Shown here: positions 2,613 to 48,804 of the stretch, piece by piece
Position numbering within the stretch: position 1 is the first letter of the stretch
How the letters are laid out: every line of letters starts with the position of its first letter
Assembly (NCBI GenBank): GCA_965603825.1
Contig: CBFDEM010000030.1
Coordinates: 310,001-374,000, forward strand
DNA: 64,000 nt
DNA from: Blepharisma stoltei ATCC 30299
Taxonomy: Eukaryota; Protista; Ciliophora
Reading direction: 5' to 3'
The notes under the pieces: generated by a model
The model's database searches: none
What the model was told of the DNA's origin: nothing
The model's input: only the letters and a program-made list of their open reading frames with translations
Program-made: the position numbers and the translations under genes

Positions 2613-3521
2613 ATGAGAAGGCTTGAGCTCTTAGACAAACACCTTTCTTCACAGCCTTTATATTGGGTCCTCAAAAACACTGACATAAAGGAATTCAAGA
2701 AAGTTGGGAACCTCAAGGGAAAAACAATTGTAATTACAGGCGCATCGAGAGGAATAGGTCTAGCAATTGCAAAAAAAGCTGCAGCTGATGGAGCTAATAT
2801 TGCGATTTTAGCGAAGACCGTTGAACCTCACAAAAAGCTTGAAAATACCATTTACACAGCTGCTAAAGAAATCGAAGAGGCAGGTGGAAAAGCTTTACCA
2901 ATTAGATGTGATATTCGCTTCGAAGATCAAGTAAAATCTGCTATTGAGCAAACAGTCGCTACCTTTGGCGGCATAGATATTTTAATCAACAACGCTTCTT
3001 ACATCGCCCTCACCCCGACTCTTGATACAACTATGAAATCATATGACTTAATGAACAGCATCGTCGCCAGAGGCACTTTTATGCTCTCAAAATACTGTAT
3101 ACCACACCTACTGAAGGCTCAAAACCCTCACATTCTCAACATTACTCCACCAATTAATCTGAACCCTAAATGGCTCGCTCCACATTTGGCTTATACAATT
3201 GCAAAATACGGAGACAGCATGTGTGTAGTTGGATTGAGTGAAGAATATAAAGGACAAATCGGAGTTAACGCATTATGGCCAAGAACAACTATCGCCACTG
3301 CAGCTATAAGACTTGCCTTAGGAGGAGAACCTATAATGCAAAGGTCAAGAAAAGTTGACATCATGTCAGATGCTGCTTATACCATTTTGACCAGCTGCAA
3401 TAAAGCAACCAATGGAAACTTCTTTATTGATGATGAAGTTGTAGGGCCTGTAGATTTAAAGAAGTATAATGTGAACCCGAACATCCCTCTAGAAGAGCTC
3501 ATGCCTGACCCATACGTCTAA
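2613..3521 (+). CDS. HSDL2: Hydroxysteroid dehydrogenase-like 2 (HSDL2-type SDR, no SCP2 domain), N-terminal PTS2-like RLELLDKHL
   Basis: TGASRGIG, INNAS, YTIAK, ALWPRTTIATAA motifs; first ATG at 2613. Confidence 0.88.
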   Translation: MRRLELLDKHLSSQPLYWVLKNTDIKEFKKVGNLKGKTIVITGASRGIGLAIAKKAAADGANIAILAKTVEPHKKLENTIYTAAKEIEEAGGKALPIRCDIRFEDQVKSAIEQTVATFGGIDILINNASYIALTPTLDTTMKSYDLMNSIVARGTFMLSKYCIPHLLKAQNPHILNITPPINLNPKWLAPHLAYTIAKYGDSMCVVGLSEEYKGQIGVNALWPRTTIATAAIRLALGGEPIMQRSRKVDIMSDAAYTILTSCNKATNGNFFIDDEVVGPVDLKKYNVNPNIPLEELMPDPYV

Positions 3522-4256
3522 TTAATAGATCTAGATATCAATTGTGTAAAAAATAAATTTAGCTAATGGTTATTATGTATAGAGCTGTAAGATGGTATAT
3601 TTAAGCCAGATAAAAATTATTTTCTATTTGCAATTTTTCGTATCAAGTTTAAATAATCTTGAAAAATCTTTGCACTTTAAATTTCAAGAGTGCTCATTAG
3701 GATTATGCATTTACTTTTATCTGATATTATTAATTGTTTACAATTCAACAATTATATTTTCTGTTCTTTATATTAAAAGGAAACTCCATCATATATGTCA
3801 TTTTTATACTTCGCAGGATCTGCAAGCTTTAAAAAATTCCATAAAGAAAGACAGATTAAATAGCCAGTTTTACTGTACATTTAAAATATCATAGTTTGAG
3901 AAAAAATTTGATTTAAATATTTAAATTAAAGATTCTAATAAAATCTTAATCTAATGTATTAATGAAGCTGTTTTAATAATACCTGCTAGATATTAGACAT
4001 TAGAATTAAATTGTAAGATTAATAAACAATGATTGTATGCAAATTATTTTATAATTAATTTTTGAAGCATGCTTTTATTCATTCTTTTTTTTCTAATATT
4101 TAATATAATAGTTAGAAAGGCTCTACTAAAAATATTATAAAGCTTCTAATCTAAAATATTTCATTAAAGGCTTAATTAGAATTTTTATGCTTAATAAAAA
4201 TACTCGGTCAAATAATTATAAGCAAGCTATATGAAATTACTTATATTTTCCATTTC

Positions 4257-36380: not shown

Positions 36381-38825
36381 TTATTCATCAAATGAGAGAA
36401 GTATGCTACTTAGTAGATCTAGATCCATATCTAATGGTTTATGCCCTAGTTCTTCCAATTTTCAGCTATAGTCTATTATTTTTGTTAAGCTCAGCCCAGT
36501 CAATTTTCCAATTTCCCTCAATATTTCTGGTCTGCTAAGCAATTGATTTTTATAATCAATTCCAAAAACTGCAAATACTTCACACTTCTTTTTTTTCTTC
36601 TTACCTTTTTTGCTTGTTTTACTTGAATTGCTTGAGTTGCTCTGAACTTCAATGGTTGCTTCCTTAGTAAATTTTAACATGGAAGGAATTGAGCTTGCCT
36701 GCAGCACAAATTCTTCAGTAGTTAATCCAGCTTCAATCTGGTCACTCATAATCGCCATAATAATCTTGAGTGCATCAATGCATCCCAATATTTCTTCTGG
36801 GTTCTGATACAAGTTATGATCAACATTCACTTTGAAAAAGTCCTGACATCTTTGCAGCAGTCCTTGGTTACGCCAAAAATAAATTTCTTGATTTTTACTG
36901 ATGTTAAGGAGCTTCCTTTTAATGTTTATTGTAATGTTTTCAGCTGTTTTTTTAATAGCACTTTCTCTTTCCTCGGGATTTCTACCTGTTGCTGTTTTCA
37001 GCTTAATTGCTTGATTTTTGATAGAGTTATTGTTTATTGTATTAATGCATATATCAAAAGCTGCGCTCAGGACGTTACCAAACATAGGGGCCATGCCAAT
37101 TATGTAGCTAATTATTGATGATCCTGGCCCTGAACTGTCCAAGGCAAGACTTCCTCCACAGATCACTTCTGCTTCTGCTATAACTGTATGCAGTTTATCA
37201 TACAATGCAGAATAATAAAGGTAAAGATAAGAATTCTGCAGAATTACAGGGTTGACTTTTAAGGCAGATACCTCAATTTCATTTTTCCCAACTTTATCTT
37301 GACTTAGCTTAGAGATCTCTTCATTATAATGATTTTTCAAATCCTCCATTTGTTTTTTCAAATCCTTAAGCTCATCCATCAGTTCTTTGGTTGGCTGGCT
37401 TACAAGATGACTTGCATTTCTTGGGTTGATTTTGTCAGCTAGCTTTTCAACAAGCTCAGCTTGCTTCTCTTTAATTTTTTCTACCTGTACAGAAACCAAA
37501 TGTTTAAAAACTGAGTTGCCTTTAATAAGGCTGCTATCAATTTGGATTTCTTCTTCAAATTTAATTGCATTGCTTTGTAATTTTCTAAGTTTTTCTAATA
37601 GTTTTGCTTGGTCGTTTCTTAAAGTTTTTCTGATGAAATCGAAGCTGCTTTTAGGAAGAGATTGCCTTAGATTATCTTGTTTAATAAGTTCTGATGCCAT
37701 TTTGAAGTCTTCTAACGCTGCTCTTTCATTTTTTAGCTCATTGTAGACTCGCCCTCTATTGCAGAAGCATAAGGCGTAGTCTGGGTTTAGTCTTATAGCA
37801 GTAGTGAAGCTTTCTATCGCTTCATTTAAAGCTCCCATGTTCATTAGAGCAATACCTTTCTCATTGTGGACTTCTGCATCATTTGGGTCCATATCAATTG
37901 CAATATTATAACTTTCTACTGCTTCTTGGTATTTTCCAGCCTTATTCATTGAAATTCCTCTGTTTATGTATGCAATTCTGTTGTCTGGCATTAGCCTTAT
38001 TGCTGTGTTAAAGCAGTTAATTGCAGAATCGTATTCTCCAAGCTCGTTAAGTGAATTAGCTTTATTTAAATAATTCTCAACAATATTTGAGTCAATTCTA
38101 ATAGCAGCATCATAGCAGTTGATAGCTTCGCGATGCATGTCTAAATTTTGCAGAGCATTACCTTTAGCAAAGTAAATATTGCCTCCATTAGGGTTCAAAT
38201 TTAACGCAGCATCATAAGATCTAACAGCTTCCTCATAATTTTCGCATTCTACGCAAGTCGCTGCTTTATTAATATGTGCATTAATATAGGCTGGACCTAA
38301 TTCTATTGCTCTATTATAACTTTCTATCGCTTCTTCATTTCTTTTGAGCTTTCTAAGAGCGTTTCCCCTGTAGTTGTATAAATTTTCTGAATCTGGGTAA
38401 ATTTTAATAGCTGAAGTATAGCACTTAACTTCCCCTTCATAATCTTCTAAGGCCTTATGGCAGTCGGCTTTATTGATATATGAATCTATTTTTTTGGGAT
38501 TAAGTTCTATAGCTGAAGCATAGGTATTTATTGCAGCTTCATAATTTTTGATTCTTTGCAAGCCCTGGGCCAGCAAACAGTAAGCTTCTTCACTTTTTGG
38601 ATTAAGGCTTACGGCTGTATGACAGCATTGGATTGATTCTTGATATTTTTTCATTCAGCTCAACGCGATTCCCTTGTGGTAGAAGGCTTCAGAACAGTTA
38701 GGATTACTATGAATAATCAAATTGCATAATTCGAGAGCTTGGGTGAAGTTTTTATCATTCAATAGCTTAGCTGATTGCTGAAGAAGATGACTTTCATTGG
38801 AGCTCTGATAACTTGATGGTTTCAT
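36381..38825 (-). CDS. Tetratricopeptide-repeat protein (about 10 TPRs) with coiled coil and unknown C-terminal domain (814 aa)
   Basis: Regular 34-aa TPRs (AYINRGI..EAVESYNIAIDMDP); extended at both ends through TGA=W to ATG 38825 and TAA 36381. Confidence 0.88.
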
Positions 38826-39175: not shown

Positions 39176-41263
39176 TTAACTTGAATTTAATTTAGTTAGC
39201 TTCCTGATGTCCTTGAACAGATGTGCCCAGGAGGCCTGCTTATAGACATCTGGATAACTTTCTACTGTGTTTATTATGTTTTGGTAAACCTGTCCATCAG
39301 AAGTTCCAATTATCGAGCCTATCATCTTGTCTGGTGGAGCTACAGCTTCAATTATATTTATGCAATGATCACTAAGCTCTTTGCAAAGCTCAAGCTCAGT
39401 TTCCCTAACAATATCAGCCTGATTTGGAGTAATCGCAAACTCTAAATACGTAGCCAGGCTCTTTTCAATTCTTTCCACTATAAAGAGATGCAATAATTTT
39501 CTAAACGCTTTCCCAGTATTTTCACATTTTGCCAACACATCATCTGCCATAAATCTCAAGTTGTTTGCCATCACTCTTTCTCCATAAGCTTTACTTAACT
39601 CCTGCACATAGAAAACTTGTGTATTGTTCCAAGCATCTATGACTTCTGCATATTTCGCTGCATTTGTCTGCAATTTGTTGATGCATTTGTGGATCAAGTA
39701 GTTGACCCTGTATTCAAGGATTTCGAAAAGAAGCTTTTCGTTGAGGAGCTCTTCTTTGTTAGAGAAGTTTGCTTTGTAATTTTTAATATGGTCGAAATCT
39801 GGGTTTAAATATTGCAGGGTTGGACTTGTGACTTTTTGGCCTTTGTACATCCTTTGAATTTGTTTGAGAAGATATTTTCCAGTTTGCTGAGCGAGAACGG
39901 TGTTGTCGCCTTCCCAGGTGGAGTTTATATCTTGGTTGTTTAGTAAACGGCCAAGGGCTGAATGGGCGGAATATCCGTGACCTCCGCATGCTTCACGGCA
40001 TTCTTTTAGAGTAAGAGCAGAAAACTGTGTGGATAAGCCTTTAAGAGTAGATAAAAGAGCATGATATTCTTGAACTTCTTCACATTCTGGGTCGACTCTT
40101 GATTTTTGTCTGACAGATTTGAAATCAGAGAGCATCTGGTTTGCTGATGCTCGGATGGCAAAAAGCTTAGGCATATTGGAGATCAACCTGTACTGATGAG
40201 TTTGATAGTCTAAAATGGCTGATTCTTGTGTTTTGCTCCCAAATTGTTTTCTGACTGCTCCATATCTTAGTGCAATTGTTAGCCCATTTTTCATGGTATA
40301 CTCGGCAAGACTTATTGTCCCTATTCTTCCTCTTAGTATCCCTCCAAGCATCATTGCAAGTCTTTTATCATTGTTTTTTATATGGCTTTTGAATTTATTA
40401 TCAAGTGAAATTGAGCTGTGCTTATCTAGCAAGCAATCATAAGGAACTCTATAGTTTTTAAAAATTAAAAAGCCGTTATCAATACCATTTAGACTGTTCT
40501 TTTTTCCACAATCACCAATTACAACTCCAGGCAGAGGTTCATGTGTATTATAGTCTCTGATAGGGATTGCAAAGACATGGATTCCTCTATCAATTCCTTC
40601 TACTATGAGCCTAGCAAAAAGGGCGGTCATGTTTGAAGATTTAGCTACCCCACCAACCCACCATTTAGCGGATGTGGCTGTTGGAGAATTAATAATAAAT
40701 TCTCTAGTTGTATGGTCAAAAGTTGCTGTAGTCTCAAGCATTGAGACATTTGACCCGTGCCCCATTTCTGTCACAGAGAGAGAGCCATAGTCGTGGACTG
40801 CATAAACTCTATCAATAAGGTTCTTGTGCTTTTGAGTGCCTAAGGATTTTAAAGTATCTCCATAGAGACCGACAGAGACTGTCAGACGAGTTGCGACTGA
40901 CGCATCAAATTCTCCAAGAACATAGAAAACTTGAGTCGACCTTCATGGGTCTGCCTCGTCTAATTCTGGAGTTATATTCTGAGCAAGATAAATCTCTTGA
41001 ATTTGTCTGACAACAAGCTCTCTGAGCTGGTCAGTGGGCATGCCTACTTCTGCTTGGTGATCAAAAAGTTTACTTGAATTTATGAGTTGGCGAATTCTGA
41101 TCACTCCAGGAGTCATATCACGAAAATAGCTCTCAAGGATAGCAGAAGCGTTTAAAGGAGATCCGCGCTGCCTAAAAGTCTGAAGAGAATTATCATATGG
41201 AAGAGCAGGAAATTGTGATAGAAGGTGAGAGTTAATAAGGCTCAATCTATGTGATTTAGCCAT
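39176..41263 (-). CDS. Peroxisomal acyl-CoA oxidase with PTS2-like RLSLINSHL
   Basis: TEMGHGSNV..LETTATFD, KWWVGG, NGIDNG, CREACGGHGY, TWEGDNTVL; N-terminal ORF joined via TGA 40943-40945. Confidence 0.93.
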
Positions 41264-42495: not shown

Positions 42496-45400
42496 ATGAA
42501 AGCGTTATGTTTCAATTTGCTCCTAACAGTGGCTTTTTGTCAGCACACGCTTAATTGCGATGTAGGTAGAAATTGAGAGCCAAAGGTGGTCCCGAATTTT
42601 CATCCAGGAAGAGAGCTCGCTTCAGGCTTAGCAAGAGGTTCCACCTTACAATCCATTCGACTTCATTTCGAGTATATGGATTTATCTATGACAGACAGCC
42701 AAGAAAGTCTTCTCAAAGGCACAGTTATGTCAGCTGTCAATAATTGATTCACAAACCTCCTGTCAGTTTATCCTCTGCAGTCAAACTTAAAGTTGAGCAT
42801 TTCGAAATGCAATAGTGTGACTGTCCCATCAAGCCATCAAACAACAGGAGTAGCAGCAGATTATATTTTATATATTTACGGCAACACAACTACAGCAACT
42901 TATATTGCTAGAGGAGGTGCTTGCACTTATGACAGTGGGAATAATAACGTTTTAGCAGGGACGTTTGAAGTCAATATTGCCAATTTTTTTGGCTCAGGGA
43001 CTCAAGATAATATTATTAATTCTATACATGAAGTGACCCATGCTCTGGTGTTTTCAAGCTCTTTATATAGCTTGTACAAACAGTCTGATGGGACTAAATA
43101 CTCAAGCTACCAACAAACTGTTAATTACCCAAACCGTGGCAAAAGTGTTACGGCTTTGACTTTTCCTACTGTTTTAGCAAAAGCGCAGAGTGCATTTGGC
43201 TGCAGCACTTTGGTAGGACTTGAGCTAGAAGATGCAGGAGGCTCTGGATCGGCTGGATCCCACTGAGACATGAGAGTGATGCCACATGATTATATGTCTC
43301 CTTCTTTTTCTTACTTCTCAGTCTTATCTGATATTACTTCAGCTATGTTTCAAGACTCAGGCTGGTATACTGTCAACTGAGATTATCCTCAAAGCATCAT
43401 ATGAGGCAAAAATCAAGGCTGCTCATGGTTTGAAAATAAATGCATAGATAATGGAGTAGCCCAATTTCCAGGATTTTGCACGAATTTAAAAAGCAGTGGC
43501 TGCGATGTCTTTCGTTTATCTGAGGCTTCTTGCTATAAGGGGTCTTATTCAAGCATTCCTTCTTATGAGCAGTATTATAGCGACAGCACGATAGGAGGTG
43601 CTTCACAGTTTGTGGATTTTTGCACTTATATGTATCCTTATACTAATCGCTTTTGCCAGAATACCACAGCTTCGAGTAGCTATAAATATTATGGGGAAGC
43701 CTTAGGGTTTACCAGCAGATGTGTTGAGTCGACATTGCTTAGCAAGAGCTACGTTTTTACAGAAAAATTAAAAGGAAATTGCTACCCAGTAGCAAGCTGC
43801 ACATCAGATGCAGCCTATTTAACTGTTGGCACTCAGACAATTAAATGCCCCTTTACAGGAGGAAATGTGACGATCTCAGGGTATAATGGAGTTCTCATAT
43901 GTCCAGCTTCCAGCATTTTGTGCGATGCAGTCCCTTGCTTAAACGCTTGCTATGGTCAAGGAATCTGTAAGTCAGGAATATGCACTTGCAATGCAGGCTA
44001 CGGAGGTAATGATTGCTCAATCGAGTGCGACCCTACTTGCAAAAATTGCAATGGAAGTGGCTCAACCAGCTGCACTTCATGCTATTCAACAGCTACAGTT
44101 ACCAATGGAGCTTGTGCTTGTCCATCTGGCAGCACATGGGATCAGAATTCGTTAAGCTGCCAATCAACCTTGACATGTGCAAGCCAATGCTCGACATGCA
44201 CAGCCTCAAGCCTATATGCTTGTAACTCCTGCAACTCCAATTATTATCTTTTTCTAGGGACCTGCACCCAAGCTTGCCCATTCGGATATACCGCTTCAAA
44301 TAGTCAATGCAGTGAGAGCTCTAATCCGAATGTTTATAAAGCTGCCTTTTACGCATGGAATAACACATATTCAAGCGAGAATTCAGCAGTCTCTCTATAT
44401 TTTGGAAGCTCTAACAGCTTTATGCCAACTCCGGACTCTTATGATCCAACCCTATCATACTCAAGAGGAGTTTATTTTAAATCCAGTTCATATGCCTCAC
44501 TTCCACCTAACAGTGTGAGCTCTACGCCTATTCTTTTGTCGCCTGTTCATTCAGCTGAAGTGTGAATAAACCCAGATAAGGTTACATCTGAACAGTGCAT
44601 AGTCTCCAAGTACAATGGTGATCCTTTAATAGAATTCAAACTAGCTTCAAATCTTTTAAGAGTCAAAATAGCGCTAACATCGACAGCGGATTATTCTTTG
44701 GATACAAAGCTATGTGATGGATTAAGTGCATCTGCGCAATCTTGGCAGTGGGCAGCTTACAAAATATCATATTCGTCAAGTTCTCTTACAACTACTCTCA
44801 CTTTATACTTAAATGCAGGCACATTTACCTGCACCTACAGCTCATATATCTTTATTGATTCCACCAGTTCCAGCAGCAATGCATTTTTAATTGGGAGTGG
44901 GTATCAAGCTTATAAATATACTGAAGGTTTTCAAGGATTTTTAGGTTCAGTATATATCACAAACCAAAATAGTTATGTCCCTATCACCCCAAGCTCATCT
45001 TGCATCAGAGACAATTTGTGCCTTTCTTCTTGCACTTTTTCGCAATACGTAAAAGATAGCAGCTGTGGAAGTTGCCTTTCCTCTTGCTCAAATGGATGCA
45101 CAAATGCTTATAATTGTTTGTCAAATGTAAATAGCCTCTGCACTGGCTTTACTAACTTTACAACTTGTACTTCATGCAATACGGGGTCATATTTATCAGG
45201 CAGCACTTGTGTTTGCATTCAGTATTCAAGTTTTGATGCATCATCAAATACATGCTTATGCAATTCTGGGTATACTTATGTATCTCAAGGATATTGTGCT
45301 GTCTGTGGAAATTATTTTAATACATATGAAATTTCTGCCTACTTTTCCCAGGATTATTTAAGCCTGATCTTGGATTTTTCAAGAAAAGTAAAATCAGAGA

Positions 45401-48400
45401 CATCGTCTGACTGCTCAATGATATTCCTACAAGATTCTTTAGAGAAGCTAGGAACTTCTCCTTCATGCTTGTGAGTGACTTCAAGCTCTTTAAGAGTTTT
45501 GCTAGGCTCTGGTGCTACTTTAAAAAATGAAAGCATTGCACTTAACCCACAAAATGTCCAAGCAAGTGGTACACTTTGCGACTTGAATATTCAGCAACTG
45601 ACCCCAACCGTTCAATTTAAGTATGATTTACCTATTCCAAGTGCCTGCATAGACGCTCCAACTTCATATTCACTTACTTGCGCTATTTATGATTTAACCA
45701 TATCTGGTGACAGATCTCAAGGGACTGATTTGACCTATAGTTGAGCAGCTACAATAACCCCTTCAAGTTCATCAATAGTATCTTACATTAAAGGTCAAAC
45801 CGGGGCAAAGTTTACTATTCCAGCATCTATGCTCTCTGTTTCTACAATTAATGTAACTCTCACTATTACAAATTTCAGAGGAATGATGTCTAATACTACA
45901 TCTTCAATATCAGTCGTCAGCGAAGCTGCACTATCTGTTCATATAGACAGTGGAAACCATGCTGCTATTTACTCTAACGTAGTGAGTCAGTTCAAAATGA
46001 CAGTTTCGAACTTTTGCAATTCAACTTCAACATCTGCATCATATAGTTGAAGCTATGTTTCATCTACAAATCCTTCTGTAGACGTTTCCTCAGTAGTTTC
46101 TAATAGCAAGCAACCAAACACTTTGATCATAAATCAAAATGATCTACCAGCTGGATATCAATATACTTTTAATGCAACTGCATCTGATGGGACAATGACT
46201 GGATGGAATACTTTAACTATTTCGGTTATCCCATCAAATCTGGTGCTTGTTTTGAATAAAGTGAGCGGATCTGTTTTCAATGGAAGCGACTTAGTTTTAG
46301 ATGCTAGCAACTCTTATGATCCAGATAATCCAGGGTCATCGCTGAATTTTGAATGAAATTGTTCTCAAGGGTCTGGAAGCTGCTTGGACTCGTCAGGAAA
46401 TCAATTGATTGGAAATGTCACCTCATCAATCCTGACGATACCTGGAAGTAAGCTGCAGGTAGGAGCTACTTATGATTTTCATACTAAGATTTATAAAAAT
46501 AATCGAACCACTTCTGGAACGGTAGAAATTCTGGTAGCTGATGGGACTGGTTCAATTTCAGTTAGCCAGCCACTAACAAGCATAGACTACCAGCATGATT
46601 TTACATTATTGCCTGATATTTCTACAGGAAGTAGCGCAACTTTCTTATGAAGTCAAAAATCTGGCCCTTCAATAGCTACTGAAATTCAAACAAACAACTC
46701 TTACATTATGTTTCCAGGTAACTCTATGAGCCAAGGAACTGCTTATACCTATACGTTGTCTATGACCTATCAGTCTGGATCAAAGATCTATTCTGACATC
46801 TCTTGGGCCACAAATGTTCCACCTTCATGCTCTAATCTTACTTCATCAAAAAATTCTGACAATTCCTGGCTTCTTTCTGCTAATTCTTGCACAGACCAAG
46901 ATAGCAATTTTCCTCTGAGTTATCAATTTGCTTTATATATTGACCCTATATATTATGCGCTCAGTGTGCCTTCTCAAAGCTCATATATATCAGTGAATCT
47001 TCCAGCTGGAACTTGGAATTTACGAGCAAAAGTGTGTGACTCGATCGGATCTTGCAGTTTTTATCTGTCAACTGTCACAGTTTCATCAAGAGTTTTGCAA
47101 GGGTCGGCTACCACTGCAAGTCAGTTTAATCAAATGATTAAAAACCCTGACCTGATACCTGCTGAAATTATATTTTACAGCTTATCAACAATTGACGCTG
47201 AGACCTTTAATGCGATGTTTGGTGCTCTAGATTATTATATTACCTTGATTTCATATATTAATAATGGAGTTTTGGACACTGCTTTGACTTCTCTTCAGTG
47301 TATGCTTAAGAATCAAAAGGCACTTGTAAATGACACTTATTTAGATCTTTCTTTTAAAATATTGAATTGAACCTTCAGCAATTATGATGACTCTATTGTG
47401 GATTATCAGGTATCAGAAATCTGCGAGATGTTCACTCCATTTTATGGGCCTGAGTTTAAATTTTATATGCAATTGCAAGAGCTGCTTGACAAGGTGAACA
47501 ATAATTGAATGAGCTCAACCTTGCCTGGGCAGTCTAAGGAATCTTTAAATTCCACTTTTCTTTCTTCAAACCGATTGCTCCCATCAAATATAGCAAATTA
47601 TACATTGAATATCCAGAACAGAACAGTAGTAATCCCTTCTGCAATCCCAATTGCCAGCACTGAAGTCTATGATTTAAATGTCTTTGTTTATCCACTTGCT
47701 GGAAATCTATCAGACATTATTGATATCACTTTTAAAAAGTCAGGAGTCTACCAGAACTACAACTTGTCTATCAACCCAGATCCCTCAACAAATTCTTTCT
47801 CAAACCTTTCTGTTCCAATTGCAGTTCAGATTAATATAAATAATGTCAATAATGATACACTCGAATGTGCTTATTACAATAATAGCGCATGAACCTCGGA
47901 TAGCTGCAATATTTTGAAATCTACTGAATCAACTGTAGTCTTCAACACAACCCATACCTCAATGTTCCAAGTCAGAGTTAAAAGTACTGTCATTCCTATT
48001 CCTGAGGACTCTTCAGACTGTGGAACTACATATGGGCCTATAGCTTCAATGATTGTTGTGGTCTGGCTGGCTTTGATATTAATCACTATTTTTGTAATTT
48101 TAGACAGACAAATTAAGTACATGAGTAGCGATTCTGTCTCAATGAAGAGCATGCTAGAAATGCACGAATTGACGACGCTTTTTATACCCCAAGGGTCATT
48201 TAGAAGAGCACAAAAAGTCCTTCAAGTCATGGGTGTTTTGCTGTTTGAGCTATTTATATGTGGAGCTATTTATCGGCCTATTGATGATCCTTACAATAGT
48301 AGTGATGGAGGCTTTGACGATTATTCTGGAAAGGAGCTTCTAAAAGTACTGGTAGCTTTACTACTAGGCCAAGTTTTATCAGTTGCTTTTATTATTCTAA

Positions 48401-48804
48401 ATAACCAATCAAGAAATTTCTCAATTTTCCAAGTAATTGCGTGCACAACCAGTATCTTTATTTCGATTGGAAGCATTATTGGGATCATAATTTTGAATAT
48501 CGATTACTGCTCAACGTATTCTGATTATTGGTTTATTGATTTTATGATTGCCTTACCTTGTGAGTTCTTCTTGTTCAATCCTCTTCATTGTGCTTTCTTT
48601 GTTTTATATAAAAGATTGACTGCTAAAGTGAGCAGTGAAGTTCCTGGAATTGTAATACATAGAATTGATGAGCTGGCCCCAGAAACGACTGAAAGAGGAG
48701 GATTAGCTGATGAAAATAGTAAATTTGATACGATGACTGTAGATTTCAATACCATGAATTCTTTTATTCAAGTAAAGGAGCCAAATGTAAAATCCGTTGA
48801 ATAA
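42496..48804 (+). CDS. 2102-aa membrane protein: signal peptide, leishmanolysin/GP63 (M8) protease, EGF/furin-like Cys-rich repeats, LamG-like, REJ/PKD-like, GPS-like motif, about 5 TM helices
   Basis: Ten ORF-track fragments in a single frame, separated only by TGA; HEVTHAL, GSH-W(TGA)-DMR, DYMS, DSGWY, W(TGA)GKNQGC; LDASNSYDPD..FE-W-NC (REJ); CAYY..WTSDSC..HTSMF. Confidence 0.88.

Follow-up and report, generated by a model that had tools for sequence, protein, structure and literature searches.

We examined a 64,000-nucleotide stretch of the Blepharisma stoltei ATCC 30299 genome (contig CBFDEM010000030.1, positions 310,001 to 374,000 of the forward strand; hereafter the window), in which positions 42496-48804 of the plus strand hold a single long gene. 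An original prediction, made from the DNA letters, had described its product as a leishmanolysin-type protease fused to a REJ domain, a GPS-like motif and a multi-pass transmembrane (TM) region, and had interpreted it as a surface receptor that carries, and possibly sheds, its own metalloprotease. The observation is confirmed and the interpretation is partly supported. Our analysis makes it probable that the gene encodes half of a polycystin-1, in the sense of a REJ domain, a GAIN domain and five TM helices, with a leishmanolysin head, and that it is one gene of a family built on this REJ-GAIN-5TM plan. The features of the gene are as follows, with positions given in the window and residues (aa) in the protein.

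42496-48804, plus strand: whole gene, 2102 codons and a TAA stop, 14 TGA codons read as Trp, without intron
42496-42543, plus strand: N-terminal hydrophobic stretch, likely a signal peptide, followed by the conserved C21 (read from the sequence)
42688-43929, plus strand: Peptidase_M8 (leishmanolysin), aa 65-478 (Pfam; alignment with 1LML)
43936-44295, plus strand: Cys-rich EGF-like region, aa 481-600, 21 Cys (sub-threshold Pfam matches; Cys count)
44482-44964, plus strand: Concanavalin-A-like/Laminin_G_3 block, aa 663-823, split by a TGA at 44563 (Pfam; scores of paralogues)
45016-45315, plus strand: second Cys-rich spacer, aa 841-940, 16 Cys (sequence; Cys count)
45796-47112, plus strand: REJ domain, best Pfam stretch aa 1213-1539, weaker signal from about aa 1101
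47065-47988, plus strand: predicted GAIN domain, aa 1524-1831, with helical subdomain A at aa 1540-1671 and beta-sandwich subdomain B at aa 1680-1828 (AlphaFold, Foldseek, VIA-align)
47953-47961, plus strand: GPS-like site H1820-T1821-S1822, predicted scissile bond between T1821 and S1822 (structural alignments)
47959-48033, plus strand: stalk of 25 residues from Ser1822 to TM1, with a conserved Cys (sequence, model)
48019-48636, plus strand: predicted five-helix membrane bundle, aa 1842-2047 (AlphaFold; structural match to polycystin-1)
48034-48111, plus strand: TM1 (AlphaFold)
48202-48270, plus strand: TM2 (AlphaFold)
48328-48408, plus strand: TM3 (AlphaFold)
48421-48504, plus strand: TM4 (AlphaFold)
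48511-48636, plus strand: TM5 (AlphaFold)
48637-48801, plus strand: C-terminal tail of 55 residues, predicted to be disordered (model confidence, pLDDT, under 50)

Gene structure

The 2102 sense codons contain no in-frame TAA or TAG and end at a TAA, and TAA codons crowd the same frame upstream of 42496. UGA has been reassigned to Trp in B. stoltei, whose introns are 15 and 16 bp long and whose macronuclear genome comprises 41 Mbp in 64 telomere-to-telomere sequences (PMC9942806). Our searches of this genome covered 41,464,486 bases in 64 contigs, the gene itself lying on contig 30. When TGA is read as Trp, the translation matches the public protein P0007 (2102 aa; NCBI/UniRef; reached through a profile search) at every residue, and therefore the public annotation (Intronarrator) holds the same single intronless model. 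One of the TGA codons lies directly 3' of the His that aligns with the last GSAGSH residue of the leishmanolysin GP63, between positions 291 and 294 of the Pfam M8 profile, a position that fits a Trp at this codon.

Two candidate 15-nt introns of the form GTA..AG occur in the frame, where about six would be expected by chance. We rejected hidden 15-nt introns, since both candidates fall within gap-free conserved stretches of a paralogue on contig 12 (described below), and an intron of 16 nt would disrupt the frame; to judge from the sequence, the gene has no intron. The stretch is thus one real, intact, intronless ciliate gene that reads TGA as Trp. The single 6.3-kb frame masked by TGA codons that had been proposed is borne out, with 14 such codons counted rather than "about 15".

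The ectodomain

Pfam was run first on the pieces between TGA codons and then on P0007, in which Peptidase_M8 (PF01457) scores 223.3 bits against a cut-off of 21 and covers profile positions 105-525 of 529. The HEVTH motif occupies residues 178-182 (43027-43041). In the GP63 structure 1LML, the counterpart of His256 (43261-43263) is the final His of GSAGSH at chain position 235, presumably the third zinc ligand (His334 of the precursor); in the Blepharisma protein, the TGA-encoded Trp comes next. Met267 of the Met-turn (43294-43296), within DYMS, stands 11 residues past His256, the same spacing from the third His as in GP63. Judged by these residues, the zinc site is complete and the protease is apparently active; the M8 protease with intact zinc ligands of the original prediction was recovered in full. 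The resemblance to leishmanolysin ends with the protease: GP63 is anchored by glycosylphosphatidylinositol or secreted, whereas in the Blepharisma protein the protease is followed by spacers, REJ and GAIN, together about 1350 residues, and then by a five-helix bundle. As surface zinc proteases with EGF-like or Cys-rich spacers, the membrane-tethered metalloproteases of animals (membrane-type matrix metalloproteinases, ADAMs and meprins) offer a functional analogy only, as they are single-pass enzymes of an unrelated protease family whose spacers and anchors are likewise of other kinds.

A Cys just past the signal peptide (window positions 42547-42570; motif C-G/D-V or E-C-G) is present in all paralogues and in nearly all M8-headed relatives. 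By analogy with GP63, it may belong to a cysteine-switch propeptide.

Between the protease and the REJ domain, the expected EGF/furin repeats are seen as Cys density, with 21 and 16 Cys in the two spacers, but the Pfam matches to EGF-type models, including EGF_Teneurin, reach only 18.8-21.5 bits at about aa 481-510 and stay under the cut-off of 24.3. The beta-rich, LamG-like block that had been noticed between the two spacers is present. It scores 23.4 bits for Laminin_G_3, just under the cut-off of 27.6, and the homologous blocks of relatives pass it (36.3 bits in the contig-12 paralogue, 29.6 in P0174 and 32.2 in P0175). What had been called a REJ/PKD-like region is a REJ domain (PF02010) at 106.4 bits against a cut-off of 25.

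Residues 1500-2102 were aligned with 46 relatives and then folded by AlphaFold, giving a model with a mean pLDDT (predicted local distance difference test) of 84.9. The model runs from two strands at the REJ end through seven helices, a beta-sandwich, the turn H1820-T1821-S1822, a last strand and the stalk to five long helices. In a Foldseek search, the top nine matches, and 11 of the 13 at E <= 0.001, were GAIN domains of adhesion G-protein-coupled receptors (GPCRs) or GAIN-containing chains, among them BAI2, BAI3, CELSR1, latrophilin-1 and -3, CD97, GPR110, GPR126 and GPR56 (E from 3.6e-10 to about 5e-5). VIA-align comparisons with adhesion-GPCR GAIN structures gave Z scores of 16-18.7 over model residues 25-332; for the GAIN domain of GPR126, Z was 16.8 with a root-mean-square deviation (rmsd) of 3.0 Å over 218 residues. 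Two less strong signals point the same way: the family profile matches the GPS region of ADGRF1 (E 4e-4), and the closest cluster in the ESM Atlas, at a score of 0.94, is one of GPS-domain proteins. The original prediction had been staked beforehand on a GAIN-like fold ahead of the first TM helix, and the model places one directly before TM1. Like the adhesion GPCRs, the protein would therefore have a two-subdomain GAIN directly before its first membrane helix, and the turn that joins the final two strands has His at -2 and Ser at +1. In contrast to them, its membrane part is not a seven-helix (7TM) bundle, both disulfides of the GPS (CxC) are absent and the Pfam GPS model is not reached.

The GPS-like stretch, from C1791 to F1824 (47866-47967), lies just before the first TM helix, where it had been reported. 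For cleaved receptors, the aligned chains stop at model residue 322, which is T1821: GPR56 at its residue 382, presumably the P1 leucine, and latrophilin-1 (CL1) at its residue 837, which is its P1 leucine (PMC3321182). The ends of these chains thus put Thr1821 in the P1 place and Ser1822 in the place of the nucleophile, so that the structural alignments assign the would-be scissile bond to the HT/S position already proposed. By analogy with PC1 and the adhesion GPCRs, the stalk would be a tethered N-terminus if the protein were cleaved.

Triad and Cys residues were counted in 47 aligned family members, eight of them M8-headed. His at -2 and Ser or Thr at +1 occur together in 36 of the 47; P1 in these 36 is Thr in 14, Phe in nine, Leu in eight and another residue in five, and HTS is the commonest form of the triad. 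A kept His and Ser around a free P1 suggests, at the level of sequence, that the cleavage chemistry is in use in the family. The two upstream Cys of the GPS (C1791 and C1804 in this protein) are kept in 46 of the 47 members. The canonical CxCxHLS is retained only in P0145, a distant member from a Logan assembly, which links the degenerate GPS motif of the family to the classical one.

Three further observations concern the GAIN region. Designed helical-repeat proteins topped a search of the profile against the PDB, and we set them aside as composition matches to the helical subdomain. The axonemal doublet-microtubule proteins 9fqr_Hn, 8glv_AE and 8j07_k3 match the region at Z of about 11, a hint that cilia contain a GAIN-like fold. 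Of the 103 members of the closest ESM Atlas cluster, 55% are entered as viruses; few members have a taxon record, and Nucleocytoviricota is the phylum most often given in those. Giant viruses may carry GPS-domain proteins, or the entries may be mislabelled.

The membrane anchor

The TM module was also folded alone, from an alignment of 56 sequences, and again gave a five-helix bundle (pLDDT 86.2, predicted template modelling score 0.86), in agreement with the earlier count of about five TM helices. With this model, the first nine Foldseek matches were all polycystin-1 (PC1) chains of PC1/PC2 complexes (query TM-score 0.50-0.62, E 0.013-0.15), four of which gave an rmsd of 3.0-3.8 Å over about 165 columns. 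A Foldseek-independent scan of 48,161 chains found PC1 chain 8z6b_A at Z 17.3 (rmsd 3.4 Å, 185 residues, chain range 3068-3610), and the next match after PC1 was a designed GPCR-like fold at Z 6.7. The longer model compared with PC1 chains by VIA-align gave Z 17.5-18.4 and an rmsd of about 3 Å over 182-202 residues, range 3071-3622. We take the PC1 range 3068-3622, in which the match skips the PLAT domain and a long loop, to correspond to TM1-TM5 (PKD1 topology, UniProt). The predicted anchor would accordingly be a structural equivalent of the TM1-TM5 bundle of polycystin-1. A 7TM anchor of the adhesion-GPCR kind was rejected, as there are five helices and the 7TM bundles of ADGRF1 and ADGRG2 reach only Z 5.0-5.5 against 17.3 for PC1.

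The kinship with PC1 is visible at the level of fold only, as a sequence-only search of the TM module against the PDB gave no polycystin match. A weak match to a CorA hairpin in that search (E about 0.01) was treated as chance, and a fold search of the ESM Atlas with the TM module gave nothing above a TM-score of 0.45.

Two parts of polycystin-1 are missing from the protein. The loop between TM1 and TM2 is about 30 residues long with two short helices, and no Pfam PLAT match was found in the protein; a search of the genome for PLAT (PF01477) was also without a match, but its controls were equally silent, so that it proves little. The channel half (TM6-TM11) is absent, the protein ending 55 disordered residues past TM5. 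At least 35 separate PKD_channel (polycystin-2-like) loci are present in the genome, several in tandem pairs; none was fused or adjacent to a REJ-GAIN-5TM gene among the matches compared, and none adjoins this gene. The polycystin-1/adhesion-GPCR layout of the original prediction can thus be specified further, the anchor matching the TM1-TM5 bundle of polycystin-1 and not an adhesion-GPCR 7TM bundle.

Set against polycystin-1 (PKD1), the sea-urchin REJ proteins and PKDREJ, the Blepharisma protein has the same order of REJ, GAIN/GPS, a stalk of about 25 residues and TM1, and its five modelled helices superpose on TM1-TM5 of PC1. It differs from polycystin-1 in having neither PLAT, nor TM6-TM11 with the TRP-like channel half, nor the coiled-coil tail, in carrying a protease head instead of LRR, PKD and lectin repeats, and in a GPS site that reads HT/S and not HL/T.

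Most of the paralogues that lack the protease carry an acidic low-complexity insert of 100-150 residues in the TM1-TM2 loop, where polycystin-1 has its PLAT domain. The loop is short in this gene and in the related genes on contigs 12 and 20.

Family members and surroundings

Searched against the genome, the TM piece located the 5TM module at about 27 loci, many of which sit within very long open frames, and the M8 piece located ten loci. Both occur together at three loci: the present gene; a gene on contig 12 whose 2323-aa product is co-linear with it and alignable from end to end; and a 1128-aa gene on contig 20 that passes from M8, EGF and LamG straight to the five TM helices, without REJ or GAIN. 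The contig-20 gene belongs to a cluster of five leishmanolysin genes with differing C-termini (883000-903000), of which it alone (L015:2038-5424) ends in the 5TM module.

A profile search of 1.84 billion representatives returned 308 family proteins at E <= 1e-3, 180 of them at E <= 1e-10, including Stentor coeruleus OMJ71464.1 ("hypothetical protein") and the product of a Blepharisma japonicum MMETSP transcript. Among the best 150 profile matches, seven have a full N-terminal M8 and align with the present protein at both ends, and a word search added two further relatives with M8, Laminin_G_3 and REJ. At least nine M8-headed relatives are thus found outside this genome (P0035, P0038, P0076, P0078, P0108, P0109, P0130, P0174 and P0175), in ENA, Logan and JGI assemblies; in-frame TGA is absent from the two of their loci that were read. 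The HExxH motif, third His and Met-turn are intact in nine of ten fused proteins, P0108 having lost the motif. Sister members bear H-type lectin or Cys-rich repeat heads in place of M8. A quick maximum-likelihood tree pairs the gene with its contig-12 paralogue and puts P0108 and P0109 beside this pair. On the tree, which has several long branches, the M8 label requires 3-5 changes, and we draw no conclusion from it on one versus several fusions.

No close orthologue of this protein turned up in a scan of metagenome and transcriptome contigs. A JGI contig, 6986 nt long and ending in poly(A), has a TGA=Trp frame of 2320 codons with one TGA and a TAA stop; its product shares 89% identity with the contig-12 paralogue over 2319 residues. 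Since this contig spans M8 to TM5, the architecture is made as one polyadenylated mRNA in a close relative of Blepharisma, which bears indirectly on the present gene.

Upstream of the gene, both on the minus strand, lie genes for two other proteins:

39176-41263, minus strand: acyl-CoA oxidase
36381-38825, minus strand: TPR-repeat protein

Small unassigned frames lie downstream, and nothing connects these neighbours with the gene.

Discussion

The protein would be a 2102-residue multi-pass surface glycoprotein composed, from the outside in, of the signal peptide, the M8 protease, Cys-rich spacers around a Concanavalin-A/LamG block, REJ, GAIN, the stalk, five helices and a tail, cytoplasmic should the N-terminus lie outside. 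The protein is a member of a large "half polycystin-1" family, REJ-GAIN-5TM without PLAT and channel half, whose heads are interchangeable; the family occurs in heterotrich ciliates and in environmental assemblies, and the protease head is found in a minority. A polycystin-like stalk would keep the protease well away from the membrane. As it retains His1820 and Ser1822, the protein may cut itself at Thr1821-Ser1822, and the protease ectodomain could then stay bound non-covalently until it is pulled off or shed. Signalling by the five-helix bundle through the separately encoded PKD2-like channels is one possibility.

Several results weigh against such a self-cleaving receptor. Of the Pfam domains whose presence had been proposed as a check, Peptidase_M8 and REJ exceed their cut-offs and Laminin_G_3 falls just short, while GPS (PF01825) gave no match in P0007 at E <= 0.01; the paralogues reach 14-18 bits for GPS, under the cut-off of 22.5. 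The CxC pair of the canonical GPS is absent from this protein and from most of the 47 family members, and P1 at its HT/S site is Thr and not Leu. In solved GAIN domains, a hydrophobic pocket accommodates the P1 leucine and the turn is pinned by two disulfides (PMC3321182). The triad is also lost in five of the eight M8-headed relatives against six of the 39 other members (Fisher p = 0.011, uncorrected for relatedness), and the closest paralogue, on contig 12, is without it. The protease-headed group therefore does not share self-cleavage as a conserved trait. Moreover, the folds of the GAIN domain and the bundle are predictions and not structures. Balancing these points against the kept His and Ser, we give self-cleavage of this protein roughly even odds.

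The same results lend some weight to a rival explanation, in which the protein is only a membrane-anchored protease, comparable to a membrane-type metalloprotease or a re-anchored GP63, with REJ, an uncleaved GAIN and the five helices serving as stalk and anchor and no signalling function. The protease site is kept in nine of ten fused proteins whereas the triad is lost in five of the eight M8-headed relatives, and the contig-20 paralogue joins the M8-EGF-LamG head to the 5TM module with neither REJ nor GAIN between them. The Thr at P1 and the missing CxC pair point the same way. Many adhesion GPCRs that bear a GAIN domain are uncleaved, BAI2 and BAI3 having been solved in that state (PMC13197933). 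However, His1820 and Ser1822 are kept here, as in 36 of the 47 members with Thr as the commonest P1, which is hard to explain by folding alone, and a five-helix bundle that matches PC1 at Z 17-18 far exceeds the needs of an anchor. We consider this explanation possible but rather doubtful. A decaying or unexpressed member of a fast-evolving surface-protein family, a pseudogene in the making, is a far poorer account and very unlikely in our view: the family is large, with fragmentary copies in the genome (matches with TAA stops, short frames), and this copy has no orthologue in the contigs scanned, but the 6.3-kb frame is intact, its catalytic and structural motifs are all kept and the AlphaFold models are confident. 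Least credible of all is a gene-model artefact in which an adjacent secreted M8 gene and a REJ-GAIN-5TM gene were read as one frame. Ciliate genes are closely packed, and in the contig-20 cluster M8 genes without a TM module do adjoin a fused one. Yet 2102 codons run without TAA or TAG between flanks full of them, the contig-12 paralogue can be aligned co-linearly from end to end, a single frame covers both halves in nine homologues from other assemblies, the poly(A) transcript of the orthologue of the contig-12 paralogue covers M8 through TM5, and the public annotation gives the same single product. The half-polycystin-1 receptor with a leishmanolysin head thus remains the explanation that we favor.

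A bolder extension of this receptor reading can be proposed, although we think it improbable. REJ-GAIN-TM1-5 would be an old free-standing receptor module that predates its fusion to a TRP-like channel in animals and that heterotrichs have kept unfused, as a carrier of exchangeable heads. Force or substrate binding would strip the protease after the cut at Thr1821-Ser1822, unmask the tethered N-terminus, switch the bundle and gate a PKD2-like channel.

Full-text literature searches (leishmanolysin with REJ or polycystin; REJ in ciliates) brought up no account of this architecture or of a polycystin-1 half with five helices, in agreement with the original statement that the combination is not a characterized family. 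That statement needs qualification, however, as the protein and the Pfam pair M8+REJ are already in public databases, and GAIN domains were reported from ciliates in 2012, "more than eight" of them in Tetrahymena (Arac et al. 2012, PMC3321182, in its survey of early GAIN proteins). For the Tetrahymena and Dictyostelium proteins, that survey stays at the level of sequence and mentions neither a protease head nor a five-helix PC1-like anchor. On present evidence, which consists of sequence and predicted structure, ours is an annotation-level finding.

Its interest lies partly in the membrane half. Polycystin-1 is the product of the main gene of dominant polycystic kidney disease, and to our knowledge the function and origin of its TM1-TM5 half are poorly understood. 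In B. stoltei, the half consisting of REJ, GAIN, stalk and five helices would exist as a complete protein, a natural minimal version with which to ask what this half does alone, in an organism that encodes its many PKD2-like channels at loci apart from the half-polycystin-1 genes. It would also be a GAIN protein whose detachable part is an enzyme and not an adhesion module. Finally, Blepharisma offers three variants that can be compared with one another: the present gene with its His-x-Ser triad, the contig-12 gene without the triad, and the contig-20 gene without REJ or GAIN.

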